Counted from the first letter of the stretch, positions 3,001-60,673 are shown. The stretch: DNA of 64,000 nt from Lepidodermella squamata (GCA_047495785.1 JBLDXI010000017.1:3100001-3164000); one strand, 5' to 3'. The notes: generated by a model from the letters alone, not told the origin. Translations and numbers: made by a program.

Positions 3001-6000
3001 ATTGCGTCATCTCAATGGAAGTCAAGCTGCACCGACGAACACTTCCTCGAGCGGACACGCGCGTGGCTCGTCGTCCCAACAAACCCCGGGCGAGTTATCC
3101 AAGTCACAGGTTGATCTTATCGACTGGCTGATAAATGAATTGGTGCCCCCGGCTAACCTAGTTGGAGCTACTGCTGCATCAGGTGCAAGTGCCTCGCCTA
3201 CCGAAGAGACTGATAATGACGCAAAGTCATCTGCTTTCAAACAAAAAAGTGATATTGCTCAGCAACACCGCTTGAAATTGATGCAAAAAATGGCCAAGTT
3301 GCAGCGGAATTTTCTTGAGAATCACCCTGAGCTATCAAACATAGCACAGGGCGGAGCTGCTGCGTCAGCCGCTGCTGCTGAATTAGTCTCGACTTCGCCG
3401 ATGGAGATTTCGGGACCGCATGTGACAGCCAATATAATTCAGCAGATGTTCGATGCGTCTTGCAAAGATGCTGTTTGCATGGTTTGCCAGGACGTGTGTC
3501 GACCGGCGCTAGTCCTCAGGGCTGCTGGGTCTTCGAGCAGCCAGCAGCATATCGTCGTGCCAGGCGGCACGGCTATGGAAACTGCTGCAAATGCGGCGCC
3601 GACAGCCTGTTTTGTCTCCTGCATGCAACGGTGCTATGTTTTGTCACAGAAGAACGCGCCAGTGCAACAGCCTGCCATGTACATGTCAGTTTGCGGCCAC
3701 CCCATCCACGCCTATTGCTGGCAACGCTATACAGGTATTTTTTTATATATTGCTGCGTTTTAGTCTAATTTGGTAATTTGGAATTATCACCATCATTAAA
3801 TGGGTACCACTGGCGGTTTCCTATTTGCGTTACGATTTTCCCGAGTTCAAAATATAACCCCGATTTAGAAATAAAGCAAAAATCTTAGTCATGCCTCACA
3901 TGGTCCCAAATCCACCGCCGTCAGTTGTTAAATCGTAGATGAGCTAAAGAAAACATTAAGCTCGATCGAATCATCCGCGGCGTCAGCAGTACACTCAACC
4001 TGGAGCCATGCGGACCTTTTAGGGTCGTCGCTGAATGCTCTGATAGCAGATCATTCAGGGCCGGACAAGGATTGTAGCCTATACTGATCATACGATCTCG
4101 AAGTCCGAACCGAGAGCCACGCCGAATGGACTTATTACGGTCTTCGCCCGAGTATCATGGGTTGGGTGGTAGCCTCAGTGCTATTCGAAGGGCTTTGTTT
4201 TGAATAACCTCGAGCTTTTTCCTGAGTCCTGGGTCAATGCCTAGCCAAACCTGGCTGCCGAAGATGCAGGTTTTGTATACCAACAGGGCGCTTTCAGGCC
4301 ATAGCCCGAATTTCCTCCTACAGACTGCACGGTTATCCATATGCTTTAGCATTAGGAAAGCAAATGAGCAAAGCAGTTAGCAGCGGCAAGCGGGACGAGT
4401 TAGTCGGGAAGATCAGAAAATTGGAGCCAGTGATCAATCGACTGGTGTTTGGCAATTAAATTTCCAAAAAAATGGTTTGGGCTTTGCAAAACATAACGCA
4501 AAATTTAATATTTACAAAAATTCGAACATGATAAATAGCAAATTGCGATATAGATCAATCGGACCCATTTGAAGAGTCATCGGAGGAACTCGAATAGATA
4601 TTCTGAGCCGTCATCGACTTCCATTCTACGTTGCAACTAATATTCTGATTGATTTTAATGTTTTTAATAGAGAGCCAACAAGCACGACCCCGGCATCGAT
4701 TTCTGCCCGGCGTTTTAACTGCCTTGTTCGGAAGCGGTCGGGGCCAGCCACTCACAAACGCCATCGCACCATGCCCGCTGTGCGAATCACTGGGCAATGC
4801 AGTCATTCCCCTTGTCGACGTCAGATCCTTCCTGCCATGCTCCGCAACATCAACAAGTGAAGTTACTGGCACTTCTTCCGTCCTGGCTGATGCTTGCAAG
4901 TTGCTCCTGACCGTCAGCGACCCTGATGAGCGTGATTATCTTATCGTGAGTAGCCATCGCACAAGTTCGACGTTAACATCGCCGTTCTCGGGCGCTACCG
5001 GTAGTGCAGTTTCGATCGCCGTGACTAATTTCGGAAAAACGGTGGCCCAATTCTTGGTATCGCAAGCTGCGGCGCAGGCGGTTACGGGGTCATCGCCATC
5101 CCTCAAGCTTCCGAGCAGCCCGGATGAGACCGTCAAATTCGTTGCAATGTCTGTAGCCCATTCAGGGCGCTGCATCGCCGCAATCATTCAGACGTTCAAT
5201 CCCGCTGATATTATGGACGAAAACGGCCTATTTACCGGCGCAGTTCGTCGCCACCTCGACTGTCTGGTCGCAGCCTCGCAGGCGGGAGTCGCCACTAGCC
5301 TTTTGGCCGCCGATAGTTTCTGTGCTGTCAATATACTAAGAATCATATCTTCCGGTCTTCTCAATTCGTGCTGCGCCGGTAGCTCTGATGATGAATCGGG
5401 ACCTCCGCAATTCAGTGCACCAGCTTTACCTGACGGAGCTGAATTACTCGCACATTTATGGACCCTTGAACCTCTGGTGCGAACTGGCCTCCAGGCAGCC
5501 GAGTCTTCGAACAACTACGCAGTTGATGCGTTTTGGCTTTGTTTCATGCTTGAGGCCGGCAAGGCTCTGGTTGCCGTTGCGAATAGTGGGGCTGTAATAA
5601 GTGCCAAGACCGAAGCAGATACGCTGAATAAGAATTCGTTTGTTGGCAAACTTTGGGCTGCGATTACATCGTCAGATTCATCTCCGTCTAGCAGCGAACT
5701 TCGCAATTCGTTGTTCTTTGCCCTCAGCCCTTTCTTGCGTTTGAAGGCGTTGTTAGCATCTGGTATTCTTAACAAATCACTATCAGTCCAGGCTTTCGTA
5801 GCCGAATGCCCCGATATCGAAACGATGTACCGAGACGCGTTGGGCTTGAGCGGACGGGTCGATCCGATCGCATGTTTGTTCGAGGGGACTGATGAAGCTT
5901 TTCCGACCAGCAATGGCATTGTCGAGGTCATCATCACTCGATTCCGTTTGGTGGCTGAGTCATCGGTGGCTGGCATTTTGCCATCGCCTAACGCACGTCG

Positions 6001-39726: not shown

Positions 39727-41827
39727 TCAGGCTCTACCGAGAAATTTTCGGGCCTGATTGTCGAAATACACAAGAGCAAGACATGTCCAAGTCCGCAGCG
39801 GGTTAACAATAAATGCAACCAGGCCGTAAGATTGAGCATCACAATAAGCCGCCCACAACTGCCATAAAATAAGAAACTGGAACAACAGCCGCTGGGCTAT
39901 TCTCGTGGGCCGCCACCGATTGCTGTGGGCAGGCGAGAAGAGCCAGGCGAAATAGAGTAGGAGAGGCATGTAGAAAGTCACAACATTGAGAAATCCTTGG
40001 AAGGCAACAACGGCGTCAGGAATGAAAGATCCGTCGTCGAGTAGCAAAACTCCATGGCCGAAAACGAGAGCATAGCGAGAAGTCAAAGCTTCACCCATCA
40101 GCCATGGTCCGAAAATCGGATAGGCGTAGATGAAGACCAAGGTGGCAAACAGCAACAAAGGAACCTGGGCGAAGGCGACGAAGCCTTTCATCGGCACGAA
40201 GCGTAAAAACCAGCTGGGCTGGTAACGAGCACTCATGAGGAGAATAATGCATAACAAGGTCGAGGCAATAAAGCTATTTCGACAGATCTTTGGGACATTT
40301 GACAAAAGAATGAGTGAGGCGAAAGGCCCGCCGATGTTGCTAGGCAACAACTGTGAGGCTCGACCAGTGTCGACAAAAAACGTGACTTCTTCCACAGCTT
40401 TTTGCCGTTTCACGTCAACAACAACAACCTCGAGCCGATGAAAAATTCCGACTAATTCATCCGGTTTCCAAGGCAACGTGTACATTGAATGAGAAACTGA
40501 ATGCCGCGTCGCATTTCCTAGGACTTTGCCGTTAAGCGAAACTTGAACAAACGCGATTTCCACATTCGAAAAGGCGAGGATTCGAATGTGAGTCGATTTG
40601 GCGATTTTTTCAAGTGGCTCGTGATTTGGCATAGCGTATAAAGCTTCTTTCGGGTTCGTGACCACGACAACCGGCCATTTACCAAGAGGGATATCGACGA
40701 AATTGAACATGCCATGATCGACAGATATCAAACGATACCTCTGGGTCTTCTGAAAATCGGCCAGTTCTAGTTCAAGTTGGCCGAGCGGAGCGTGCCTGGC
40801 ATACAGAGCCAATTCAGCGTCGTAAACCGAATGCAGGTGGCCGCAAATGTAAAGAGCGCCGTGCCGAATTACATTGCCGTCAAAAAGCCGCTTCTGAGAC
40901 GAAACTGTACCGCCGACAAAGATGGTCGACGCTGGATAGTGTCCGGACCATATCGCTAACTGCACTCCGTCTTTGGCTAAGCTATCGTCGGTTTCTCTAA
41001 AGGCATCCAGACTTGATTCGGGTAGAACCCCGAAAAAGTTATAGGGCCTGCGGAAACCCGGGTTAGGAGTGGCGTCAGTCGCTACTATTGCATATTGAGT
41101 CCCATTTACTGTGAATTTGTGAACAACATGTCGTTCTTTCGAGCTCCACTGATGGGCAAAGGGCGAAAATTTTCTGCAAAAACAAAGATCGAAAAGGTCA
41201 ATAAACAAGGAAAATCTTGCCTACCTGTATAGGTCATTAGACACAGAGCCAACATCGAATTTATCGTGGTTTCCACGCATATCAATCCAGGTTACTTGTT
41301 CTTTCCCAATCGAGGTCTCACCGGTCGCCAAATATTGATCGAGTAACTTGCGATACTTTTGCCATTCAGACAATTCTTGGCCTGAGTGAAGCAAATTCGC
41401 TTGCTTAGCGTCCGTTAAATCGCCTGATAGAAAAACATAGAATGAAACCTTCACTACTGTCAGCAAATTTGTTTTTCTCACCTGTAGCTACAACTGCGAG
41501 AGGTTTTATGCTTGGAATAATTTCAGACAGAAACAGCTCCAAATTATCAGGTATGTGAAAGTTTCGGTAAGAGCTTATGTGAATGTCACTGATTTGTAGA
41601 ATCCACCAGATGTGGCTGTTATCCTCACTAGGATACGCGTCTCGGAGACTGGGTGACATTGTAAACTGTTTCGAATCGATGACATCGGTAGCTGGAACGG
41701 CGGCTAGCAGCGTATCTGCGGCCAGGTACAAAAACAGGGAGATGCAAACGAGTAAAATACCCGTGGCATTTCCACTCGCCGACTGGACGCACGGACTTAT
41801 CCGGCTTTTACCTCTCTGTTCATTCAT
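39727..41827 (-). CDS. TMEM62-like metallophosphoesterase membrane protein, copy B
   Basis: QISDIHIS, TGDLTDAK, DMRGNHD, RRPYNFFG, GHYP, ICGHLH, ELELADF; multi-TM C-terminus. Confidence 0.88.
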
Positions 41828-41985
41828 CAAATAGACTCTAAAAAGCCTTTGGATACAAAATAGTTTTACTGATTGTTTCAATCTCAAAAAAGTGCTATAA
41901 AAATTATTGACAATCTTGAAATGTAAAAATTATTTTCACCGCTTATTAAAACGAAGAGATTTCATCTAAAATATTCACACGGTTA

Positions 41986-44047
41986 TCAGTCCTTCAGCAG
42001 AGGTGTAGTAACAGTTGATACTTGTTTGAGATCAGAGTGATTGTTTTTCGAATGATTATTCACGGAATGAACCTGCTTCCCTCGACGGCGAAAGCTGATT
42101 TCGACATAAATCAGACAAATCACCATCCAAACTTGAGGAATGTTGGTAACAATCGCCAACCAACCGTAGGCCAGCGACAAGAAATAAGCACGGCGAAGTT
42201 GAAAGTAGATAATAGTCCCTAGGAGGGTCTTACAGATTAGCCACTTGTATAGCTGACGTCTCGTGCTAATTTGATTGGTTTGCCCAAAGGTTAACATAAA
42301 ATAGAAAATAACTGGCACGGTGAAACGAGTGATGTGAGCGATCCCTGCATAAGCGATACTGGGCTCTGTTATGTACTTGCCATTTATGAGCAGGACGCCC
42401 AGAGGAAAAACTACCCCGTAAGTGCCGCTCATCATCATCCCGAAGAACCAAGGACCAACCGAAGGGTAGATTATTATGAAGAAAAATAATTTGTAAATCA
42501 TTCCTTTTGCAGGCTGTGAGGCCGAAGTCGATTTTTTCATCTTTTTGCTAGTTGCCCAAATATGGCACATGTTTACCTTATCATAGTAACGCATTAGAAA
42601 AATTAAAAAAGTGACCAGCATTGTCAGAGAGTAAAAAATGGCATAGAGGCTGTTTTGCAGACTATTAAGCAACAAAAATGACGCGAGAAAGCCACCGGGG
42701 GCCGGCAGCGAGATTCCATGAAGAGATAGCCAATAACCGTATGGCTTGACGAAGAACTCGACCCTTGTTCTCGAATTAACGTTGCCACTCTTGTCAACGG
42801 CAACCACTGTGATTTCGTGGAAAATGTTCAAATCTAGCGTCGATGGATTCCAACGCAAAGTGTAAAAATCCGGGTCGGTTTCAGAGGCCATTGCGTTGCC
42901 TATCACTTGGCCATTGAGCCGAACTTGAATGTACTCAATGCCATACGGCGAGAACACGAGCATTCTGATGTGAGTAGATTGCATGATTTTTGATATTGGT
43001 TCGTAAGCAGGCATAGCATAAGCAGCTGGTTTAGGGTTCGTCACAAGAACAATAGGCCAATCGCCCATTTTTACGTCAACGAAAGACATCAAACCATGGT
43101 CAACAGCCAGAATACGGAATGTACTGCGGCGGCGAAAATCACTCAACTCAAGTTCTAATTGACCTGACGGGTGACGGGCGTAACATTGCGGCACAAAAGA
43201 CCTGAAATCGTGGTAATGGCCGCATAAATACGCGGCTCCATGCCTAATTTCGTCATCACCATTAATATTTGCAAAAAATACTCAATTAAAAAAATTACTG
43301 AACAACGTTGCCCAAGATGGTTCGAGATCCGCCAGATAGAATCGACGCGGTGGGGTAGTGACTAGCCCAAATTGTTAGTTGATTAGAACGGAGCATTTCA
43401 TCAGTCATTCGCAAATTTTCCAAAGTTTCAGCGGATAGATAACCGAAAAAGTTGTAGGGCGCACGGAGGCCCGGACTTGGAGCAGCATCTACGATCACTA
43501 TTCCATAGCTAACGTCATCGATGCTGAACTGGTACACAATGTGCTGATCCTGGTGGAGTAAAATTCCGGTATTTGCGCTGTCATTTGATATCGAGTACAT
43601 TGCATAGAGATTCTGGTAGTGACTTGGTGAAGGAACGTCAAACGAGTCGTGATTGCCACGGGTATCCAGCCACATCGGATATCGAATCAGTTTATTTGTA
43701 GAGATTCCAGCCAGATATCGCTGAACAATTTTGCGATAACGGCGCCATTCTGCCAATTGCTGACTAGAAAGCGGGTATTGTCTGGGAGAAATCGCGTTGG
43801 TAATATCACCGGTTGCCAAAACCACATGCGGCTTTATCACAGGTAGAATATCGGTAACAAATTGCTTGAAATTTCGGATGGATTCGAAGTTTTGAGCCGA
43901 GCTGAGATGCACGTCCGACACTTGCACGAGCCACCACAAATGCGATGGTTCAGCACCTAGAACTACATCGTCGCCGATTGTACTCGAGTTACCGGCCGAA
44001 GCTGATTCCGCTAGCCACACCACCGCGATCAAAGGGATTAAAATCAT
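41986..44047 (-). CDS. TMEM62-like metallophosphoesterase membrane protein, copy A
   Basis: QVSDVHLS, TGDITNA, DTRGNHD, RAPYNFFG, SHYP, ELELSDF, AVDHGLMSFVD; multi-TM C-terminus. Confidence 0.88.
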
Positions 44048-47402: not shown

Positions 47403-48891
47403 TCAAATGTTGTCAATATCTAGATCCTCCATAGCCTCCTTCTTTCCTTCCTGGGCTCCAGGGGCCTGGATCACTTCAACGACACCGACCTTGCCACTGT
47501 GGCTGAAATCGACATGAAGGTCCGAGTCGGCTTCTTCCTCTTCTTCAATTTCTGGCTCAGCTTCTTCGTCCGACTCTTCCTCTTCAGCCTCCTTCAGCCA
47601 TGCCATGAATGGCTCTGCGGCAGCGTGGATTCGCTTGGAGATTTCTGAACCGACGTAACGTGAAGACGCCTTCTTGTCCCAGTCATAAAAGCCCTGCTCC
47701 TCAACAACATCAGCCATGTAGAGAATTTGCAACAACGGTGGAACTCGTTGCTTGATCTCAGTTTCAGTCAGACCTGCAACCAGCTTCTCGACTCCTCCAA
47801 GCAAATTGCGTTGGGCACGAACATTTTTGTAGGTGAACTAAATTTAGATTCACATGATCAACACATTTCATTCAGTATATATTAAGCTTACCTGATGAAG
47901 TATATGCTTGCATCCCTCTAAATCCTTCTGGAAATTTTTCAGCGACACCAGCACGTCCATCAGGAGCAGTGGCGCTTTGTCTTTAATAGCCAGAGCATCG
48001 GCTCGCTCGTACACTAGCTTAGCTGACGCAATTAGCTGCCCACTTGCCAGTAAATTTTTGCAGTAGGCGTAAAATATTTCCAGTTTCTCTTCCTCCGTTT
48101 TCTCGGATTCGTCAGTCATGATGAGGTTTCGAACGTGTTCAGAAAGCTGTTGCTCTTCTTGGCGACGCCTAGCTTCTTCCTCGGTATCTTCCAACCAATC
48201 ATCATCATCATTATCATCAGCATGTTCGCCGCTGTCTTGGCTGCCAAAACCAGCTGAGCCATTCCCATTTTGCTCGGTTTTCGACTTCTTCGAGCTTTTT
48301 CCCTCTTTCTTGGTCTCTTTCTTTGTTACAACAGGTGACTCAGTTTGATCTGGCGGATGTTTGATCAAAAACGAAGAGAATCTGCTGACAGCTTCCACCT
48401 GGCCGGTGTGACCACATGCGATGCAAGTAGCTGTAATAACTTGCTTTTTCGAATTGATCTGCAACTTTGTCTCGGGGTTGCCGCAGCCCGTACAGAGGAC
48501 GTATTTCTCAATAAAACCATACAACAACTCTTGCAGACGTTCAGCGGTGTGTGCTCCATTCACAATATAGCGTTCGTTTTTAGTATCGACTTGGATCTGG
48601 GCACCGAGCTCGCATCCAAAGAATTTAGTCGGGTCTAGACATCGGCAATGAATAACCAGATAGAAGACCGAAATGAAAACTTACAAAGCGGAGGGCGCTT
48701 CAAAGCCCTGGAAATATCAACCATATTCACGATGACAGTCTTAATCCCGTTACCTCTTCCTTCAATCTGAATGGAATAATATTTAACCATTAGATCGGTA
48801 CATTGAATATTAGCATTACCTTAGCCACCAGTTTAGGCATTTTGTACCGTTCAAAAGTATCGGAAGTTTTTCTGATGTTGATCATCGACAT
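47403..48891 (-). CDS. EIF5: Eukaryotic translation initiation factor 5, multi-exon
   Basis: RYKMPKLVAK|IEGRGNGIKTVIVNM, YPTKFFGCELGAQ, FIEKYVLCTGCGNPET, W2 domain AEPFMAWLKEAEEEESD. Confidence 0.96.
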
Positions 48892-50908
48892 TTTGCTATT
48901 CTTAGTCGAATGTGGGGATCACAGTGATAGTGTATTAATGTATGACTCAAGCGATAGAAGTCCTCGAATTTGGCCGTCGACGTTCGACACCTTCGTAAGC
49001 GTAACCGTTGATTTTGTTGGTGAAACAACACAGCATGGGCTCGCGTATGTCCTTTGGGCTTTTTCCTCGCAGCTGCACTGTAAAATTGCGAGCGTAATGT
49101 CTCAAGATTCAGTTCGTTCGCACCTAAGCAATGGATGAGGTTAACAATTATTCAAACAGGTTAAACTAAAACATACCTTCAATTTTCGACAATGTCATAT
49201 ACAAACCAACCGCTATTGCAGAAATCCGCTTAATTCAACGCCCTTTCAATGAAACTCTAGGTAAAAACAGAAACGTAATTAATATATTATTTGCCAATCA
49301 TATCTGCTCAAAAATCAACAGGGTTCAACGATACAGCGCACAGCTAGAGAAAATGCCAGGGAATACAACTGGAAGACTGAAACGCGATTTGAAACCTGGG
49401 CTGAGTATCTGAGAAGCCGAACTGTATAATTGAACCTGAGTAATGAGTAATGATTCATGCTGAAGGAATAAGAGAATGATGCAACAGGAAAAGAAGAGAA
49501 GTGTCAATAAATCCCAAGGCTTCATGCACCCAAGTAATTGATAAAACCCGAAACGTTTGATTGTGCCTTATGTGATCTGTTGTCATGATTTAATAACAAT
49601 GAAAGCCAAGAAACTTTCAAGACAAGAAAGTAGCATTTGGTGAAATGCAGAATAGAAAAGCTTCAGTAAGATGTGACTAAACAAGAGAACGTTTAATTAG
49701 AGAATAGAGAATGGGAACAATCGCCAGGGCAGAATACAAAAGACTTTGTGCTTCTAAACTGCGAATATAGCCGTGGTATTTGGTCATGAGTAACAAGAAG
49801 ATTCATCCAGCCGCGGCGTGGCAGATGGCGGGAGGCATGGAATGGATGTCATTAGTTGGTTGCTATGAATTTGGAATTTCCAAGGACCATAAGGACGAAA
49901 GTCATGAATAATTCCGAGCTGAGGATAACGTTTATCTGGCATGCCCTCAGAATTTTCAGCTTGCACTCTCATTTCTCATCCCGCATCCCGGTGAAAAATC
50001 GTGGGTCGTGGAAAAAAAGAGCAAGTAGTTTCGTTGTGAGCTTCTTGCCGTGTGTGTTGCTCATCCCCCTTACGGATCTCCTTTTTCTAACACTCCATTT
50101 TTCCAAAATCTTCAATTTCCGAAATAGCGCAGCCTTCCACAAAATAAATTCTGAACATTTTTCCATTTCGTTGTTTAAAGTCAAATAAAGTTCAAAAATT
50201 AAAAACCGACAGTACAGTGCGCACAAAAAGTCAGGTCCCATCCTGTTTTCCGCTGCAGCGAGAGCTACCGCTCAGAAATTAAAATAAATTAAAAAATTGA
50301 GAGAAAATATGAATTCCGTTGCGAAATTTGAAAAATAAATGCACAGAAAAACATGACGCTAAAACCCTCAATCCAGGTTGAGCGGGGAAAGTTGTGAAGT
50401 AAGGGATTCTTTGTTTTGGATTATCTCGAAATCTAGGACGGTTGCACCCCAGGATTTCTCGAATCTACCAGTCGTCAGGTTTCGAAGAATCCGATTTAAT
50501 AACAGAATACACATGTTACCGTCTTCAATTCTGATATACATACCCTTGAAATAGAGCACTTTCTGCAAAAAAACGACATTTTCCACTGGATTTGAACATA
50601 ATTTTTACTTTCCCTCAGATCCAAGCACGGTAACCACATAGTTTTTTTAGCATGCCTTAAAGGTTGAAACTCCGCGAGTATTTTTGGTTCATAAAACCCT
50701 TGTGTTACCGTTTTCAAAATTTAGGTTCTTAAAGAATTGAATAACGCCTGCAACATCCCAGCCAAATTGATAAATTAAATTTGAGCCCAATTCAAAAGTT
50801 GAAACGGTAACATGTCCTTTTTATTTGCGTGCTTTAAAGAATCGAGATATGAGATTAGTTTTTCGTAAAGAAATCCATAAGGTTCCGTGTTCTTTTTCTA
50901 GATTCACC

Positions 50909-51556
50909 ATGTCTTCGCCCAGCTCTGCCAGTTCTGATCTTCAGGACGAAATTAACTGCAAAGTCTACGATATTTGCCGGAAACCCGCGCCTTCCTCAAT
51001 CTTTTCGACACCATATATTTTTTACTTCTTCTCCGACTTCTTCTCGTTTTCTCTGACATCGTCCTTGATCATTTTAATGTTCTGCGTCCTCAAGATCACG
51101 TCTTTCGCCCTGTATGGTAAATTTTTCAGTCTCATCTTTTGCATCATTCGACTTGTTTTAATCCTGGCTTTGTTGCTTTATTTTAGTGGATTTTCTTTTC
51201 TTCTTGGATTTTTGTTTCTTGCCATTGATTTTCATCCGTTTTTTCTTCATATTTTTACTCAGTCAAAGCATTATTGCGCTCTGCTGATGAAATTTCCTCC
51301 TTCTACGGATAAACCTATCTCGCTTGCCGAATTTGATCGCCTTTCAATAGATTACACGAATTCGGAGTTGCAAAAGCTGAGAAATTACGTCATGAGTCCC
51401 CAATGCAATCAATGGAACCTCGTTCTGCGCCTTCGCAATGCAACACAGTTCGCATATGCTATCGATAACAATGAGATGAGGGACTGCAACTTTATGCCCG
51501 AAGTCGGTGATGAGAAATCTGAGGCTGACAGCATTAGCTCACTTGATTCGGATTGA
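50909..51556 (+). CDS. NEMP1/TMEM194-like inner nuclear membrane protein (truncated, 215 aa), transposon cargo
   Basis: Several hydrophobic TM segments, then FPP..ISLAEF..YTNSELQKLRNYVMSPQCNQWNLVLRL..QFAYAI, matching the NEMP nucleoplasmic motif (LTEEEY..ETxKALxELRxxCxSPxCxxWxxVxRL..RFAxFV); acidic tail. Confidence 0.8.
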   Translation: MSSPSSASSDLQDEINCKVYDICRKPAPSSIFSTPYIFYFFSDFFSFSLTSSLIILMFCVLKITSFALYGKFFSLIFCIIRLVLILALLLYFSGFSFLLGFLFLAIDFHPFFLHIFTQSKHYCALLMKFPPSTDKPISLAEFDRLSIDYTNSELQKLRNYVMSPQCNQWNLVLRLRNATQFAYAIDNNEMRDCNFMPEVGDEKSEADSISSLDSD

Positions 51557-51738
51557 GAACTTATGCCGTAATTTCTCTACTCACAACTCCGAACTAGTCT
51601 AATCTATTGCGAGACTTTCAATTAGGCATTTAACTTTGTTCTCTTCATCTCCATTTTTCATGTCCCTAATCTGTAATTGTGTAACTACGAAAATGAAATT
51701 TTTACTAATTTTCAGTCTTTTGTTTTATAGATATTATT

Positions 51739-52866
51739 ATGTTCACAACTGAGGAGAGAATATTTGCTTTCAATAATACCAAAGTTCCCTACCGACAGTT
51801 TTGTGAAGCTTGGCGAAATCGGTTTGAAAGTAACCCCCCGAACAGAAAATACCGCCTACGTCTTGTCAAGAAATTTAATCAGTCAGGATCGATCCATAAC
51901 TTGCCGCGATCAGGTAGACCGCGCTCTGCTAGAACGGACGAAAATATTTATCACACTGCGATTGCGTTATGTGAAGACATTGCTGACCCCGAAGTTAATA
52001 TTTCAGTTACGAGGCCGCGTGTCGAGGATATTGCGGACCATCTTATGATTTCCAAACAAAGCGTGCGCAATATCATACGTTTCAACTTGAAATGGCGATG
52101 CAAAACTGCATGCAGAGTCCATCAGCTGAATCAACAAGACATTTATCGCCGAGCAAACTTTTGTAGTGCAGCTCGAAGAATGCTGGAGATAGATCCGAAC
52201 TTCCTGGATATGATAGTGTGGACCGATGAAGCACTGTTCACGCTCAATGGAACAGTGCGTACTAGTTACTTGCGCTATTGGGGCGACCCGGCTGATCGAA
52301 GGAAATATTACTCAAAGCGCCGTGAGCACAGTGGCGTCATGGTATCCATTGGTTTGTGGAGATATGGCATTCTGGGTCCATTCTTCTTTGATGACTTGCC
52401 ACGGCTTGAGCCAAACCGACCCAAGGATAGGATCAACGCGGAAAAATATTGTCAGCTTCTTAAAGAGCGCTATTTTCCTGAAATTAATAGGCAATTTCCA
52501 ATGACCGACAGCGAGTTGCGATCTGATGTTTGGTTCCAACTCGACGGCGCGCCCATTCACACCGCCACTCAAACAAAGTATCTGCTTAACTTGCATTTTC
52601 CGGAGCGCTGGATAGGAAACAAAGGGCCTATGAATTTTCCTCCTTACTCGCCCGATTTAACGCCACTGGATAATAGTTATTGGGGCGTTCTTCGTACGCG
52701 GGTTTATCGCCGTCGGCCATCTACTCTTCCTCATCTCAAATGGCTCATTGAAGAGGAGTGTAAAGCCATGTCACTGGACTATATTGAAAAAATTTGCACA
52801 GTGGAAATGAAAAGACGAATCAAACTTGTGTGTCAAGAAAACGGAAACTTCATCGAACACATTTGA
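51739..52866 (+). CDS. DD41D transposase, 375 aa, intact
   Basis: N-terminal HTH with GRPR motif; WTDEA, QLDGAPIH, PPYSPDLTPLD; 41 residues counted between the 2nd and 3rd catalytic Asp. Confidence 0.95.
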   Translation: MFTTEERIFAFNNTKVPYRQFCEAWRNRFESNPPNRKYRLRLVKKFNQSGSIHNLPRSGRPRSARTDENIYHTAIALCEDIADPEVNISVTRPRVEDIADHLMISKQSVRNIIRFNLKWRCKTACRVHQLNQQDIYRRANFCSAARRMLEIDPNFLDMIVWTDEALFTLNGTVRTSYLRYWGDPADRRKYYSKRREHSGVMVSIGLWRYGILGPFFFDDLPRLEPNRPKDRINAEKYCQLLKERYFPEINRQFPMTDSELRSDVWFQLDGAPIHTATQTKYLLNLHFPERWIGNKGPMNFPPYSPDLTPLDNSYWGVLRTRVYRRRPSTLPHLKWLIEEECKAMSLDYIEKICTVEMKRRIKLVCQENGNFIEHI

Positions 52867-53092
52867 CAGTTTATTTTCGTTGACGATAATTTATTTGAAT
52901 TTTTGTATTTGTATGTTGAGTTACTAGTCAAATATTGTTTTACTGTCTTCCTAGTCAACATGCATGCAATATTAAAATTAAAATAAAATGACTTGTAGCA
53001 CCAGACTTTTACTATTGAGGCACGAAATTATAGGCAAGATTGTAATGCAACGAATATATTTTAGTCAGTGCAGTGATCATGCAGATGAAACC

Positions 53093-54046
53093 TTATCTGC
53101 GTCTTCTTGGGACAGTGAAGCGTCCAGTGCCGTCTCTGCTTACTTCTTCCACGAGCTGAGTAGGCAGCCAGCTCTTAGCACGCTCATACATCCTCTTTCC
53201 GAGGCCAATTATGATATACCAGACATCAGATTTCGTAAAGACGAAAATCCATCTAATGATAATGCAGATGGTGGATTCTTCCAGCATCAAGCTCTAAAAA
53301 TATCGAAGTCAGGTTTATTGAGAAAGTCTGTCTTGGGTACTTACGAGAGCCAAACCGACAGTCGTGTAATATGTCGCGGCAATTATGAACTCCCCGATGG
53401 CACAAAATAATATTTGTAGCAGCAATTCCTCGCAGCCAAGCTTGAGAAATGATTTGCACATCATCCATAGCGCAATTATAATGAGGTAAAAAATCAATTG
53501 GCCTTTTTTGAACGATTCTTGCTGATGAGGTAGCATTAGAATTTGGGAGATAGCTACTCTCCAAAGAGGATATTCCAGAATGAATTCGTTAAACTTTGTC
53601 CTGACTTCCAAAAAGCCGGCGAAAAAGTCATTGACCGTGTCTATCGCAATCGATTTGGCATCAAATTTAACACCGGCGCAATAGCCCGGAATTTCAGGAT
53701 AATACGCTGCGTAGACGTCCAGATCTTTCTCATCATAACTTGCATAGCAAGTCTTCCAGTTCTCGGCTGCGCTGCAATTTTGCGTCTTCCTTCCTTCTCG
53801 CTCAGCTTCGCAAACAACAAGCTCGAATGCTAAGCGGCGATAATCAGGAGTCTCATCACTTTTGCATTTCGCGTCAGCATTAGAAATCCATTCTTTGAAA
53901 CATTTTTGCTTTCTCGTTAGGAGCATTTCTTTGAATTTTCTTCCAGAAATGATTCGCAATTGGTCAACTTCAAGAGAACTCGTTTTATCGGCAGGGATAA
54001 CGCCCTGAACTAACATCGGCAGCCAGATTGCAATAAGACGGATCAT
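53093..54046 (-). CDS. Brambleberry/KAR5/GEX1-family nuclear membrane fusion protein-like (about 300 aa; exons 54046-53345, 53293-53093), transposon cargo
   Basis: Signal peptide MIRLIAIWLPMLVQG. Six-Cys domain C..C..LAFELVVCEAEREGRKTQNC..KTC..D..Y..YC..TVN, like Brambleberry (NCQxxxEGRxTYPC..KECT..MD..NAY..VC..TVN). Two or three TM segments; 51-nt GTAAGT..TTTAG phase-0 intron at 53294-53344. Confidence 0.78.
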
Positions 54047-54194
54047 TCCAGCAACTTGCAAGTAAAATTAATATAATAATTCCTACATCAAAGATACAAT
54101 CTAGAATCAAAGAAAGTTATTAAGTAAAATTTGAGCTAAAATCTGAATAGAAAAATTACATATGTTGCAAAATGAGCATAGTAAACATGTAATT

Positions 54195-54627
54195 TTAGTC
54201 TAGTTTCACCCCCGCACGATCAAAAGTCACTTGCTCGTTGTTAGCAACAAACTCAATTGCACCTCCTCTGCCCTCCTCGACAGCTACAGGACGGACTCGC
54301 CTTTTCAGCGTCTTCTTAATTAGTAATGTGAACAGGATGATTATGACTAAAAACATCACCGCCGCCACAGCCGCAAGGCCGACTATTGCTCTATGTACAA
54401 AAGAAGATATGACTCTATTATTGTTGACGAAAACAAATATCATACTCCTTGTGGTCAAATAATTGCACCGGGGTACTGGCTGACGGATGGCTTTGGGCCT
54501 CTGGTTCAGGTTCTTCCGACGTTCCAGCGCTGTGTAGGGATGTGGCTGTGGCTGTAACTGTGGTAGGTTGCAAGGTCGGTTGGGTTGAGCAGATCGCCCA
54601 CAAAAGGCAAAGGGGAGATTCATCCAT
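54195..54627 (-). CDS. Small single-pass membrane protein with Ser/Thr/Pro-rich N-region (125 aa; exons 54627-54446, 54390-54195), transposon cargo
   Basis: A 55-nt GTATGA..CATAG intron joins two ORFs in frame; TM AIVGLAAVAAVMFLVIIILFTLLI followed by a KKTLKRR stop-transfer signal. Confidence 0.65.
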
Positions 54628-55761
54628 GATTTTCTATAAAATTCTATTTAGAATGAGGGTAAGACGATGAGAAGATCTTGTGAGCAAATGTGCAGGAGAT
54701 TACAGCGTCGAGACTACGGAAATAGCAACTGACGACTGCGGGCGAGTGCGAGAAAGGCTGAGCAACTGACCTACTATGTACTTCTAAACCGCCTTTGTTT
54801 CCCGTTTCCCCCCGTTTCCCCTGGCAACAGACGTCCGTTATTTTAATTTTAATTCATAAAAATTATTAATTATCAATTTTGACAACATATTTCTAATTAT
54901 TTTCAAATTTTACCCGCGAATTTCCGGGTGAGCGGGGTGGGACCTGACTTTTTGTGCGCACTGTAATTTGGGAATGTAAAAATTCTGCGGAAAAAGCCGA
55001 GAACCCCTTGCCGCTTTCTCGTCTGAGGCAGAGCTGAGAGCTGAGACTCTTCACGGTGTACGTTAGGCAGGATACCACCTACCGCCTGACAAAACTTTTC
55101 TCAGATACTCACCCATCACCCTTAAAAAATTGCAATATTAATATATTTCAATCCTTATTTGGGAAACGTTTTAGTTCTTATCTTCTGCAGTTTACGACGA
55201 GTTCTTGCCTTTTGAACAGTTCTAACCGCTAGCCCTAGCTATCAACTCTTACATACCGGGTAGAAAATTTTAGGAAGTATTATTCGGCTGTCACATCGCA
55301 CACAGGTCTTGGACTTTGATGTTGTGGCAATCAACTATGAGATATTTTCGATCTTATTGCATCTGACCATTGTGATTTCAGGATTGGCGAATACTAACCT
55401 CCTCTTTTGAATCGCTGCAATATTCGTCTTCTGCCTTATGATTCATGATTTACAATTATTACAATTTTCCGAATTAAAATGATCAAAAGCCATCAATGAT
55501 GAGATTGCTGCTGTTAGAAAGAGCTTGCGCAAACTTGTTATGTCTCTTCACGAATACTTTTCCTTCGTATAACACATTATTGATTGTATTGCTTTATTGG
55601 CTATCGTGTCTTTAAATCCTGCATATTTTTTCTACTTTGAACCTAGAATATTCATTATAAAATGGCCAGCGTACGATAGCAGGGACGAAGACTTCATGCC
55701 CTAAGAGGTGCATCACCGTGCTTTTAAATACTTCTAATTTCTAATTCTTCGTCGTTCCAGA

Positions 55762-58700
55762 ATGGCCGTTGTGGAAGAAAGAATTTACGAGCTCGAGAGA
55801 TTATGTGGGCTTAACAGTGATTTGCGCGGCCATTCTACTAATGGATTGGACAAGACCATATTACGCTTTATCACCGTTGATACCTTATTGGATAGTATCA
55901 TCGCACTGTATGATGACTATTGTGCTTCCTCATCTCGACAGCGCGATAAATCGCTCAGTCAATTCGCTGAGTGGGGTACGTTCTAATATTTCGCTCGATC
56001 ACATTTCGATAATCAATTCATATTAATTGAATTCAGTTGGCCCTTTCATTTCTTGTGCAAAGAATTTGCGACTTCAGCGATTCGATTTCGATCCAATAAC
56101 TATCATTGGCAAGGGTGCGTTTGGCGAGGTCTCGCTCGTTCGTATGAAGGACACTGGCAGAGTTTATGCTATGAAGACCCTCAATAAAAGCGAAATGCTG
56201 AAGAGGGCAGAGGTAATAGGCTTACAATGAATGTAATGGCATTTTATTGAACTTGATTGATATTTCTAGACTGCTTGCTTCCGTGAGGAACGTGACGTCC
56301 TCGTGCATGGTGATCGGAGATGGATTACTAATTTGCACTTCGCGTTTCAGGATATCGAAAATTTGGTAAGTTTACTTGATGACGGAAATCGTAATTTACA
56401 GTATAATCTAAATTCTGTAGTATCTGGTAATGGATTACTATCCTGGTGGCGATTTGCTGACGCTATTATCGCGTCATGATGACCATCTCACAGAGGTAAA
56501 TCTATTATTTGAATTTGTTCGTCATTATATTGAATTTATTTTCTGCAGGATATGGTCCGATTTTATGCCGCTGAAATTGCCCTTGCCGTCGACGCAGTTC
56601 ATCGTATTGGCTATGTTCACCGTGACATCAAGCCAGATAACTGCCTACTCGACCGATCAGGGCATGTTGTGCTGGCCGACTTTGGATCGTGCCTCAAATT
56701 AGACTCGGAAGGTCTCGTAAGGACAGCTGTCGCGGTCGGTACACCCGACTATATCAGCCCCGAAATTTTGATGGCAATGGAGCACCCAGGAAGATCGGCG
56801 TATGGACCTGAATGTGATTGGTGGAGCCTGGGGGTGTGCGTATACGAAATGTTGTTTGGCACCACGCCATTTTACGCCGAGTCTCTTGTTGAAACATACG
56901 GCAAAATTATGAACCACTCAGCGCATTTAGCCGTCCCACCCAACGTCATGCTGGATGGTAATCATTTTACACGCTCTATAGCAACGTTATTTTCACGTGT
57001 GTCTATTTTAGGTTCAACTGATTCTATTGTTGATGAACAAATTTCTTGCTCCGACGAAGCTGCTGATTTATTACGCGGGCTCATTACCGATGCTAACGTC
57101 CGTCTCGGCCGCCATGGCTTTGAAGAAATCCGGCATCATCCTTTCTTCAAAGACGTTGACTTTGAAGGAATCCGCTACTCACAGGCGCCTTACATGCCTA
57201 ATGTCTCCAGCGACTGGGACACTTCGAACTTCGATAATTTTGACGGCATTGTTAATCAGCAGAACAATAACGGACTGGCGGTGATAGCGCAGGGTAACAA
57301 CCCGGCTTGTCCCTCGCCTCGGCCGACAGGCAACATCGTTAGCACGCAGCTGCCTTTCGTTGGCTTTACTTACACGGAAAACAGCCGATTGAGCTGTTCT
57401 TTCCCGAAAGGTCCAGCCGCAGAGACGAATTACTCGGCCGAGGTTTACGAGTCTTCTTCGTCGCAAGTTGTTAGTTCTGGAAACGGCAACACCGGCGCCC
57501 TATCGATCCGCCACGCGTCTGCATCATCGAATGTAGACAGTCGGCGGAGGAGTATGTGCGAAGAGTGCGATCGCCTGAGAACAGAACTGGAAAGCGTACG
57601 CGAGGCAGCTTCCCGCCTGCAAACTGAACTCGAGGAGAAACGCCGGCTCGACGCGGCGGCTGACGATTCAGCCGTGGAGGAACTCGTTGCGACCGTTGCC
57701 CAGTTAGGGAAACTAGTCGCTGAAGGAGGCGCCAACACGCAACTAGCCGAGCGTGCAGCTCGTCTTGCCGCTGGAGCTTGCGTTGCCCCGACTCAGAGCA
57801 CGAGCAGTGCCGCCAACGGCATTGATGCCTTCGACGCCCCTGGATCGCGGACGTCTGCGGGTAACCAAAATGCGGTGGCAATGGGCGAATGGCGCCGTCG
57901 TCGGTTAGCCCGCGTCGAGCAAATGCTTCGAAGCGAATTACAACAAGCCCTCGCTGCTGAAATCGGGGCGAAGCGGGCTCTTCAGGTGCAATTAACCGAA
58001 GTTTCCGAAACGCTCGCTGCACAGCTTAAACGAAGCGAAACTCTCGAGACAACTTGCGAACAACAGAGCGAGAAAATCGTGTCATTGGAAGGTCGAATCA
58101 AAGAACTTGAAGAGCAGTTGCAGCACGGTGCGAAGCCTGCAGTTGTTTCAACTAACGGGCCGAAAATTGTGCGTGACGACTCGTCGAACGATAACGGCAG
58201 TGAGCATGCCTCAGTTCATGTCATCGGGCGTACTGTTTCCATGCCTACCACCGTTTTACCGGCATCCCCCAACCGCCATCTGAGCAACAATTCCAGCTCT
58301 AATAATTCAGCGCGAGCACATAGTTTTGTTACTCGGTCGTTCAAACAACCAGTTCGGTGTAACCTTTGCTCGAGTTTGCTGGTCGGTCTGCTGCGACAGG
58401 GCGTTCTCTGTGAGAACTGCTCCTACGTGTGCCATCGAAACTGCGTCGTCAAATTGCCATCGACCGCATGCCCACCGCCGGCTGAACTTCAGCGGCGGAA
58501 CTACGGCATCGACCCAAGCACTGGCATCGGAACAGCCTACGAAGGTCTTGTCCGCCTGCCGAGACCGGGTGGTATTCGAAAGGGCTGGCATCAATTCAAA
58601 CTGGTCGTCTGTGACTTCAAAATGTTTTTCTACATGATAATGCCACAGAATGGGTCGCAGAGCGCCGCGGCCAGTTTGGTTGTCGATATGCGCGATGAAA

Positions 58701-60673
58701 ACTTCTCGGTTAAGGAGGTTGCTGACGATGAAGTAATTCACGCGTCTCGAAGCGATGTGGCGAGCATTTTCCGAGTCACCGCGACAGAATTGAGTGCTCC
58801 GGGCCCTGTTACACTTCACACCGTGTTTGTGTTGACAGAATCGCCAAGAGAGCGGCAGCACCTTGTTTGTTCTCTCGCCGAACTTCACCGGGTGTTACGT
58901 CGAGCCGCTGCGAAAATGACCAGTTCATTTTATCAATACCCGTCAGCAATTCAAGCCAGATCGGTGTATGATGCCGATCAATTTCCCTTCCCTGCCGTCA
59001 GAACTGTTCATTCGGCTTGTTTCATCGAACGAGACCGAATCGCTCTGGCGACTGACGAGGGTCTTTATTCGTTAATGCTGGAAAACGACTTGTTAATCCG
59101 CGTTTTCGACAAAAAGCCGGCTGTTATCGTCGAGTACGTAACTGCTGAGCAGTTGGTCGCTGTGGTAGGTGGCCGCAGCCGGTCTGTTCGTTTGTTGCCA
59201 TTGCTTGCTTTGGACGGGCTCGAAACGCCCGTGCATCGTTTGACCGAAACGCGTGGTTGTGTCGCGCTGGCTGTTGGCTACATTCATCAGTGCACGGAAG
59301 TGGCGTTGGTCGTCGCACTCCGCCGCACTGTCGACGTGTATGTGTTCACAAAAACCAAACAACGCTGCAAGCGCCTGCGCGAAATTCCGCTGTGTGTACC
59401 GGCGTCGGTCATCGCCGCGGCCACGGTCTCGCAGTCGGCTAACATTCTCATGTCGGCGACAACTGGTTCGATCAATTCGTCAAACGGGTCCGCCCTGCCT
59501 CCGCCGCCGCCTACCTCGACGAACTCGGCGACGATGAACAGCCTGACGTCCACCTTAACGGCGTCTTTTTCCGGCTCGCTCGAGCCGCGCTTCGTCGATT
59601 TCATCGGTGATCGCCTGTGCGTTGGCGTCTCGCGTGCCTTCTTGCTTATCAACGTTGACACGGGTGACTGTACGGCTTCAATTTGCCTCGACGATGCGTC
59701 GATCGACGTCCTGCCTCAGCGGCTTAACCAAGCTTTGTGCCCACTGGCTGCCGCTGAGGTTTCGCCTGATGAAATCCTACTTGTTTTCTCGCTCCTTGCC
59801 GTTTACGTGGACGCCGGCGGTAGAAGAACTCGCGATTCGGAAATTTTATTCCCAACAATCGGCAGGTCGGCTCGAATTTCCTGGCCATACTTGCTGTTAT
59901 TTTCTGACGCTGGTCTTTTCATTTACGATATTATGACGGCGGAGTGGATTCAAACCGGGTGCCTGCAACGTGCGATTCCGATCAGCCGCGATGGAGTCAT
60001 TTGTTTGCTGCCGCCTGTTGGCGACTCTAGTGCGGCGTCGAGTAGCGGCAGTCCACTCAGTACTGTTGTTACAAGTGCGTCGGGCACTTCCAACAAACGG
60101 CGTCTCGTCTACCTGAAAAACATGCATTCTAATGGATCCGAGATACCGCCTCTGCCCGGTGACCCAGATGGCGATCGGCCGGTTTCCGGTCGCCGTGTTA
60201 ACATTGTCACGAAAAATGACGAAAGAATCAATAAGCTGTCTTCAGAACGAAGGTACCTAAATATTTTCAGTTCTTAGTAAAAATGTTGAAAATTTACTAT
60301 TTATTATTTCTAATTGCTAACCATTTTTTTCGTTTTTTTTCTAATTAGGACAAAACTAATCAGTGGTCCGACTGATTTCCGGGTTGTTGAGCACTGGGGC
60401 TCTGACCGAGGTCGATCGATGCTAGCGTCTGTTGGTATTCACAACACATCAGGAGGCGGCTCTTTGCTCGCTTCGCCGTCTTCTAATACGGGTAATACGA
60501 GCCACGGCCACTACCAGATGCAGTACGCGCCGAATAACGTGTGCGTGTCGCCCAATGGCGGCGCTTCCTCGACCCCGTCCCCGACTCACAACGCTAACAA
60601 CAACATCCACAACAACACGACCAACAGCAGCAACGCAAATCAAAGCTTCTCATCGAATGCCTGGAACGTCTAA
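55762..60673 (+). CDS. CDC42BPA: MRCK / Genghis khan Cdc42-binding kinase, multi-exon
   Basis: AGC kinase ([38 protein letters not shown]), coiled coil, C1 (HSF..CNLC..CENC..HRNC), PH (GTAYEG..KGW), CNH, CRIB (LISGPTDF..H). Confidence 0.93.

Follow-up and report, generated by a model that had tools for sequence, protein, structure and literature searches.

A 64,000-nucleotide (nt) stretch of DNA from Lepidodermella squamata (GCA_047495785.1 JBLDXI010000017.1:3100001-3164000), referred to here as the window, contains a mariner-type transposon that carries three membrane-protein genes in addition to its transposase gene. One of the encoded proteins is related to the Brambleberry/KAR5 family and another to the NEMP family of nuclear-envelope proteins. 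The element spans positions 50215-54963, and its parts are listed below by position and strand, with the basis of each assignment in parentheses (aa, amino acids; ORF, open reading frame; GC, guanine plus cytosine).

50213-50214, no strand: left copy of the TA target-site duplication (direct reading)
50215-50240, plus: left terminal inverted repeat, 26 bp (26/26 against the right end; fits the lineage end pattern)
50241-50908, plus: left arm, non-coding, GC 0.36 (no long ORF in three frames)
50909-51556, plus, ATG to stop: truncated NEMP-like gene, 215 aa, intronless (Pfam PF10225)
51739-52866, plus: DD41D Tc1/mariner transposase, 375 aa, intact (uninterrupted ORF)
53093-54046, minus: short Brambleberry/KAR5-family gene, 300 aa (gene model and profile searches), with exon 1 at 54046-53345, an intron at 53344-53294 (51 nt, GTAAGT...TTTTTAG), and exon 2 at 53293-53093
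54195-54627, minus: small single-pass membrane protein, 125 aa (gene model and hydropathy), with exon 1 at 54627-54446, an intron at 54445-54391 (55 nt, GTATGA...ACATAG), and exon 2 at 54390-54195
54628-54937, minus: right arm, non-coding (no ORF)
54938-54963, minus: right terminal inverted repeat, 26 bp (26/26 against the left end)
54964-54965, no strand: right copy of the TA target-site duplication (direct reading)

The inverted ends (CAGTGCGCACAAAAAGTCAGGTCCCA) are identical at 26 of 26 positions when 50215-50240 is read on the plus strand and 54938-54963 on the minus strand, and together they delimit 4749 bp holding four genes. No further match to this end sequence with three or fewer mismatches was found in the window, where the expectation from shuffled sequence is 0.00. 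Note that the TA duplication is only 2 bp long and would arise by chance in 1 of 16 cases, which makes it weak evidence when taken alone. A preceding reading of the window, made from the sequence without database searches (the sequence-only reading), had described an intact DD41D element with perfect ends at a TA, together with an uninterrupted transposase and membrane-protein genes that numbered three, were intact, and in two cases contained clean spliceosomal introns, and all of these particulars were borne out. The GC content of the element is 0.411 compared with 0.454 for the rest of the window.

The four genes form two inward-facing pairs, wherein the NEMP-like gene precedes the transposase gene by 183 nt on one strand and the small-protein gene precedes the brambleberry-like gene by 149 nt on the other. 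The left and right arms are the presumed promoters of these respective pairs. Within the left arm are imperfect repeats of TGTTACCGTYTTCAA, present as direct copies at 50514-50528 and 50703-50717 and as an inverted copy at 50792-50815. These repeats could be transposase-binding or promoter elements, and no counterpart was seen in the right arm. We also inspected the surroundings of the four start codons (50870-50911, 51700-51741, 54044-54090, and 54625-54670) and observed that a pyrimidine run ending in AG lies 6 to 10 nt ahead of three of them, those of the NEMP-like, transposase, and small-protein genes (TTCTTTTTCTAG, TTGTTTTATAG, and TTTTATAG). The brambleberry-like start has only a weaker version (TTACTTGCAAG). 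Together with the tight spacing of the gene pairs, these runs resemble the features of trans-spliced, operon-like units, and the host may therefore use spliced-leader trans-splicing.

The transposase aligns end to end with relatives of 371 to 378 aa, and 87 homologues were found, the best of which is 62% identical over 100% of the length. Its catalytic triad consists of D163 (WTDEA), D269 (QLDGAP), and D311 (SPDLTPLD), wherein we take D311 to be the third catalytic residue on the assumption that it aligns with the E of the Tc1 'NPIE' motif. The spacing of 41 residues between D269 and D311 assigns the protein to the DD41D class. The same spacing is present in the related transposases P0001, P0002, and P0004, and distant simple relatives have spacings of 40 to 41. 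Pfam yielded only sub-threshold matches to DDE_3, DUF4817 (17.5 bits), HTH_32 (17.7 bits), and HTH_29 (16.3 bits), and PF16087 is present in the precomputed annotations of relatives. The nearest named proteins are arthropod transposases annotated as mariner or SETMAR, with approximately 30% identity, and no exact match to the window transposase is on record in public assemblies. As a separate observation, the transposase of several related loci (L002, L003/L004, L005, L007, and L008/L009) is split between SPDLTPL and the catalytic D by an intron or a stop-containing gap, and the ORF is uninterrupted in the window, L001, and L006.

The brambleberry-like protein begins with a signal-like N terminus and a six-cysteine domain, which a linker of about 60 aa connects to three membrane spans and a basic tail. 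Its hydrophobic regions comprise residues 1-19 and three segments within 182-252; span and signal calls for this and the other accessory proteins were made with a simple hydropathy window. The six cysteines are C49, C61, C79, C91, C100, and C123, of which the last four are invariant in all seven aligned element sequences and the first two are present in each aligned element sequence covering that part. Apart from the coiled coils, this layout corresponds to the definition of the Kar5 family, which combines a signal peptide and a six-cysteine domain with one or two coiled coils and two to three C-terminal spans (PMC4291462). In the element protein, the first span follows C123 after only about 60 residues, indicating that the coiled-coil part is missing. 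In yeast, the cysteine domain is required to localize Kar5 at the fusion site and the coiled-coil region is essential for its function (PMC4291462).

Pfam returned no match for the window protein, including none to Tht1 (PF04163) at E ≤ 1. However, Tht1 also matched none of 51 relatives at E ≤ 0.01, named brambleberry proteins included; the family model evidently fails to reach the animal members, and its blank therefore carries little weight. A profile (A1) was built from exon 1 of the window gene and six homologous ORFs from related loci, and its comparison with 1.84 billion representative proteins gave 147 matches at E ≤ 0.001. The 20 strongest (E ≤ 1e-10) are mostly short proteins of 70 to 350 aa, and the ten of this class that were looked up are unnamed metagenome proteins. 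Many weaker matches are proteins of 300 to 770 aa that carry the matching domain near the N terminus. Among the weaker matches are proteins named 'Protein brambleberry' from Nematostella (A7RG01, E 1.1e-7) and Clastoptera (E 2.3e-5), a cluster holding the Pinguiococcus 'Nuclear fusion protein KAR5' (E 7e-4), and uncharacterized proteins of Lingula, sawflies, a beetle, and a slime mould. By using hhalign, A1 was aligned with the named proteins at 97.6% probability (E 4.8e-12) over 111 columns with the six cysteines in register.

An AlphaFold2 model of residues 31-130 is a confident helical bundle (predicted local distance difference test scores, pLDDT, of 84-96). A Foldseek search of this model against PDB and BFVD yielded nothing at E ≤ 0.001, and thus neither a solved nor a viral counterpart. 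We know of no solved structure for the Brambleberry/KAR5 family, so this blank was expected. Word-indexed homology searches with the NEMP-like and brambleberry-like proteins were likewise blank and say nothing about absence, because cargo sequences that are 34-47% identical are too diverged to share 5-residue words; relatives missed in this way were recovered with local hidden Markov models (HMMs) and the exhaustive profile search. Note that a 140-aa ORF (52988-53410, plus strand) overlaps the brambleberry-like gene in antisense orientation, opposite exon 2 and the 3′ portion of exon 1, and the P0001 contig has a called ORF of 106 aa in the corresponding position. The 140-aa ORF has no Pfam match and is probably a shadow ORF.

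The 215-aa product of the NEMP-like gene matches Pfam PF10225 (NEMP, formerly DUF2215) at 35.6 bits, compared with a cut-off of 28.7. The match spans profile positions 129-239 of 249, and the first 128 positions are unmatched. Consistent with this, the protein begins about 40 residues ahead of its first span and lacks a signal peptide, the luminal N-terminal region, and approximately two of the five spans of NEMP1. Hydropathy indicates about three spans (residues 40-113), which are followed by a conserved 100-residue tail. A homologue in L006, situated directly upstream of a 61%-identical transposase (tblastn 8.6e-24, 34% identity), independently reaches the PF10225 cut-off (28.8 bits, positions 197-242). 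The two proteins share only 34-38% identity, and their best-conserved stretch lies directly after the last span and matches the end of the Pfam model (DKPIS..FDRLS.DYT..EL..LR..V.SP.CNQ..LRL.N..FA). The short form recurs in relatives with 201 aa and at least 238 aa, which argues that it is conserved rather than recently truncated. A PDB sequence search with the window protein gave chance-level matches only. NEMP1 itself has five spans, which mediate oligomerization, and region B of its tail binds BAF and RanGTP (PMC4422613). Both family assignments proposed from the sequence alone, NEMP and Brambleberry/KAR5, are thus upheld, the former by the Pfam scores of two diverged members and the latter by the profile search and hhalign.

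The small membrane protein has a threonine-rich N-terminal half, a single span, and a basic tail, and no Pfam family matched its 125 aa. Homologues in L010 and L001 lie upstream of the brambleberry-like gene on the same strand, and all three small proteins share an N-terminal motif, MDxSPLCLLxGIC.

Relatives of the element were recovered as 11 distinct metagenome loci whose transposases are 27-62% identical to that of the window. The closest (45-62% identity) all reside on ENA metagenome contigs of about 2 to 6.6 kb. A brambleberry-like gene is present in every examined locus that extends past the transposase, and it lies inside the ends wherever both ends are visible. Two complete elements were recognized: L005, with TA-flanked ends at 54-78 and 4905-4929 (4872 bp), and L002, with TA-flanked ends at 140 and 5411 (5268 bp), each with the brambleberry-like gene inside. 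The window, L002, L005, L007, and L008 share an end pattern that reads TA followed by CAGTG-N5-CMAAAAG-N4-GTCC.

Contigs from four other samples have the same gene order as the window. On the P0001 contig (62%, 4694 bp), ORF calls alone place a 201-aa ORF flagged as a weak NEMP match at the position of the window's NEMP-like gene, followed by a 376-aa transposase and an opposite-strand ORF of 234 aa, which is the exact length encoded by exon 1 of the window's brambleberry-like gene. In L006 (61%), the NEMP-like gene is followed by the transposase. L010 (59%) reproduces the right half of the window element, with the small-protein and brambleberry-like genes on the strand opposite to the transposase. 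L001 (45%) has a transposase followed by an opposite-strand brambleberry-like gene, whose intron position is the same as in the window, and a small threonine-rich membrane gene. The small threonine-rich gene and the truncated NEMP gene therefore recur in the window's own sublineage. In L002, L003, L005, L007, and L008 (44-50%), the brambleberry-like gene lies downstream of the transposase on the same strand. Three further contigs, L057, L058, and L059, were found through an exact match to the brambleberry-like protein P0247 and are 98.5-99.4% identical to L007. The most distant locus, L011 (27%), has a brambleberry-like gene head to head with the transposase. No inverted repeat was found at L011, so its ends are undefined and the link consists of adjacency only.

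As a negative control, a transposase-profile scan of JGI metagenomes provided 45 DD41D-type loci with transposases of at most 36% identity, mostly on contigs of 1 to 3 kb, and neither the brambleberry-like nor the NEMP-like gene was found in any of the 45. An exact search for the end sequence in JGI metagenomes returned none.

Neither Pfam nor a local HMM found a NEMP-like gene in a second group of relatives, sublineage B (L005, L002, and L007). This group has other conserved ORFs, located in L005 at 1735-2190 (plus), 3795-4322 (minus), and 4297-4572 (minus) with counterparts in L002 and L007. One ORF sits between the transposase and brambleberry-like genes, and the opposite strand encodes a 176-aa protein with a signal and a single span and a 92-aa single-span protein; no Pfam family matched these extra ORFs. 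An ORF of about 175-185 aa is shared by L001 (5900-6475, plus) and L011 (42-611, minus) and in L011 is located just downstream of the transposase. Mutator-like element (MULE) transposases and a Ty3/gypsy-type polyprotein adjoin the elements in L001 (3274-4245), L003 (2786-4090), and L011 (5082-9113), indicating that these contigs come from transposon-rich DNA. L007 and L057 are 99.4% identical over 4.5 kb and have a common left flank, and their last 270-300 nt ahead of the expected right end (from 4523 in L007 and 4619 in L057) are wholly divergent. This could reflect variant right arms, different copies, or an assembly chimera.

The accessory genes appear, from these comparisons, to be inherited with the transposase and thus to be a conserved part of the lineage. 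Identities of transposase and cysteine domain are 0.59 and 0.47 for the window and L010, 0.70 and 0.53 for L005 and L007, and 0.57 and 0.45 for L003 and L008. Over all pairs the two identities correlate with a rho of 0.53, where the pairs are not independent. In a maximum-likelihood tree, the element-linked copies and three unnamed metagenome proteins are separated from all cellular brambleberry/KAR5 proteins with support of 92/95, a split that is indicative only because the branches are long. Subgroups of the element-linked domains mirror transposase similarity. The co-divergence of close pairs, the tree split, and the lack of cargo in distant DD41D relatives fit vertical co-inheritance. Note that the closest element pairs with available DNA are only about 65-68% identical in nucleotides, leaving synonymous sites saturated for a ratio of nonsynonymous to synonymous substitutions (dN/dS).

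The relatives fit a history in which a DD41D mariner acquired a brambleberry-family gene once, long ago, and the two then diverged together, with the NEMP and small-protein genes added or retained in the window's branch. The sequence-only reading had proposed that the cargo looks selected rather than randomly captured, and this proposal is strongly supported, given that the cargo travels with the transposase down to 45% identity and is adjacent to it once at 27%. Its view of the element as a cargo-bearing mariner also stands. Its further ideas, namely that the element manipulates pronuclear or karyomere fusion, reaches the partner genome at fertilization, or works as a drive or toxin-antidote module, are speculative. 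However, its picture of a single element that picked up host genes gives way to that of an old lineage with inherited accessory genes. Likewise, of the two-family cargo that it envisaged, the brambleberry-like gene is the constant accessory gene, and the NEMP-like gene is confined to the window's sublineage rather than being a general part.

We conclude that the element is an intact and probably still mobile member of an undescribed DD41D lineage, and that its accessory proteins probably aid it at the nuclear envelope of germline or embryonic cells. Given a complete DDD triad and perfect 26-bp ends flanked by a TA duplication, the element should move by cut-and-paste as other mariners do, and the action of the encoded transposase on these ends, with insertion into TA, is the well-founded step of the mechanism. 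The three accessory proteins would be inserted co-translationally into the endoplasmic reticulum and nuclear envelope wherever the element is expressed, most plausibly in the germline or early embryo, where host NEMP and Brambleberry are described as acting. There they may raise the success of the element by tethering or re-admitting its excised form at the nuclear envelope or, alternatively, by biasing nuclear-envelope events after fertilization. In the model we prefer, they would keep the excised element at, or return it to, the chromosomes, and the truncated NEMP protein keeps spans of the type that mediate NEMP oligomerization, along with a conserved tail motif that may overlap the BAF- and RanGTP-binding region of the vertebrate NEMP1 tail. 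For Sleeping Beauty, excision falls with element size and self-integration rises above about 4 kb; BAF (BANF1) inhibits this self-integration and is detected in complexes containing the transposase (PMC3952818). The long retention of the cargo despite the cost of length to Tc1/mariner elements argues that the accessory proteins serve the element.

Several points weigh against this conclusion. Every functional step assigned to the accessory proteins is inferred, and only one element copy is visible in 64 kb. Among near-identical contigs (L007/L057/L058/L059, L008/L009, and L003/L004), comparison demonstrated no distinct insertion sites: L008/L009 and L003/L004 are nested, and L007 and L057 share their left flank. 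The accessory proteins evolve faster than the transposase (34-47% compared with 59-61% identity), and the NEMP-like gene, being limited to one sublineage, cannot explain the whole family. Finally, without a coiled coil the brambleberry-like protein might not fuse membranes and could instead antagonize the host protein.

A more specific version of the mechanism, which we consider quite unlikely, is that the accessory proteins constitute a nuclear re-entry kit. BAF would coat the excised DNA and thereby also block the suicidal self-integration of a long element. The truncated NEMP protein would bind BAF and draw nuclear-envelope membrane around the transposon DNA, and the brambleberry-like protein would fuse the resulting 'mini-karyomere' with the nucleus, either in a germ cell or in a blastomere at the cleavage stage. 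If true, this kit would enable a mariner of 4.7 kb to persist through open mitosis and reinsert, and it would be the first known case of a transposon whose own genes give it the use of the machinery that assembles and fuses the nuclear envelope.

The main competitor to an element-serving role is a selfish drive or toxin-antidote module, in which the brambleberry-like protein would act as a poison of nuclear or karyomere fusion in the zygote or embryo, with carriers rescued by the NEMP-like or the small protein, such that the element spreads by killing or disabling non-carriers and not by aiding transposition. The truncated form of the brambleberry-like protein, which keeps the localizing six-cysteine domain and lacks the coiled coils, is typical of dominant negatives, and the two separate gene pairs would suit a module of this kind. 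Moreover, fertility or nuclear events of the early embryo require both host families. However, L005 and L002 of sublineage B lack the NEMP-like gene and have other small membrane genes instead, which means that no fixed toxin-antidote pair is conserved across the lineage, and a drive module has no need of an intact transposase or of perfect ends. We therefore regard a drive function as unlikely.

DNA transposons commonly capture genes, as exemplified by Pack-MULEs and Helitrons, and the cargo might accordingly be host fragments captured once by a mariner and carried along harmlessly with no benefit to the element. The cargo proteins are indeed trimmed, fast-evolving versions of host proteins. 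Passive hitch-hiking is nevertheless improbable. The cargo genes remain intact down to 45% transposase identity, with the six cysteines, the spans, and the intron position kept; cargo and transposase diverge together; and the cargo-free relatives are distant rather than degenerate members of the lineage. Furthermore, extra length is costly to Tc1/mariner elements (PMC3952818).

Three membrane proteins on a mobile element, including a membrane-fusion-factor relative and a mucin-like single-pass protein, could also package the element or carry it from one cell or species to another. The fusogens that nematode Mavericks are reported to encode provide an analogy, several diverged lineages co-occur in the same metagenome samples, and the GC content of the element differs from that of its surroundings. 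Such a vehicle for horizontal transfer is decidedly improbable, however, given that the element carries no capsid, polymerase, or packaging gene, that no extracellular form of a 4.7-kb cut-and-paste element is known, that the brambleberry-like model had no viral match, and that Brambleberry/KAR5 proteins act on nuclear rather than plasma membranes (PMC4291462). Finally, despite the weakness of a 2-bp duplication by itself, it is extremely improbable that the locus is an assembly artefact or a set of host genes between two separate mariner ends or miniature inverted-repeat transposable elements, because the identical ends have no further copy in the window, the independent complete relatives L005 and L002 enclose the same genes between their ends, and the gene order recurs in four other samples.

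With regard to its setting, the element sits between divergently oriented host genes, an eIF5 exon at 47871-48563 (minus strand) and an MRCK gene at 56552-60274 (plus strand) with kinase, C1, PH_MRCK, and CNH domains, both of which were found where the initial reading had placed them. The domains of the MRCK gene mark the host as an animal. An empty-site allele, if present, is expected to read AAACCGACAGTA followed directly by ATTTGGGAATG. As seen in the window, the genome is compact: its exons are very long, and its introns measure about 50 nt. Rfam and tRNA scans of the window gave no match. Elsewhere in the window (39730-43194, minus strand), a TMEM62 Ig-like domain occurs in two neighboring ORFs, suggesting either that one is a tandem duplicate or that the two are large exons from related genes.

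Tc1/mariner elements serve as the textbook example of a minimal transposon, consisting of two ends and one gene. The element described here shares with other DD41D elements (Visitor and rosa) the DDD triad with a spacing of 41, the TA duplication, and the short inverted ends, and its weak Pfam matches hint at an N-terminal helix-turn-helix region. It differs in its 4749 bp and four genes, the described elements having a single gene and lengths of 1024-2258 bp, as established for bee DD41D (Visitor) elements (PMC8472432). Its relatives within the lineage are also long (4.9-5.3 kb).

The accessory proteins depart from their cellular counterparts in comparable ways. The brambleberry-like protein resembles Brambleberry/KAR5/GEX1 members in its signal-like N terminus, luminal domain with six cysteines in register, C-terminal spans, and significant profile similarity to named members. 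In contrast to cellular proteins of about 500-770 aa (400-770 aa among the cellular brambleberry matches), it has 300 aa with a linker of about 60 aa and no long coiled coil, and the element copies are transposon-encoded and form a separate, fast-evolving branch. The NEMP-like protein resembles NEMP1 (TMEM194A) in the last spans and the motif that follows, with two members at or above the Pfam cut-off. It differs in having 215 aa and lacking the N-terminal part, and its binding to BAF or Ran is conjectural.

Gene-carrying DNA transposons include the ciliate TBE and Tec elements (Tc1/mariner-related and multi-gene), Pack-MULEs, Helitrons, Mavericks, Starships, and Teratorn. These likewise have genes beyond the transposase, in some cases conserved and serving the element. 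The ciliate elements, however, have other accessory genes and reside in germline-limited DNA, whereas the present element uses the standard genetic code in an animal host. To our knowledge, nuclear-envelope proteins have not been reported on any of these transposons. A full-text literature search found no published link of brambleberry to a transposase, of a mariner to nuclear-envelope cargo, or of DD41D to a multi-gene element. Thus, the transposon class is known, but a conserved nuclear-envelope accessory module has not previously been described.

The retention of a Brambleberry/KAR5 relative inside the ends through deep divergence, joined in one branch by a cut-down NEMP, implies that the nuclear envelope constitutes a bottleneck whose manipulation can benefit a DNA transposon. 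The element offers a testable connection of DNA transposition with the BAF/NEMP axis, and it may represent a new kind of selfish interference with fertilization or early cleavage. It also provides two poorly understood families of nuclear-envelope proteins in a natural, minimal form, and neither family had a usable match among solved structures here. More generally, these relatives illustrate that accessory-gene modules of eukaryotic transposons can hide in metagenome contigs.

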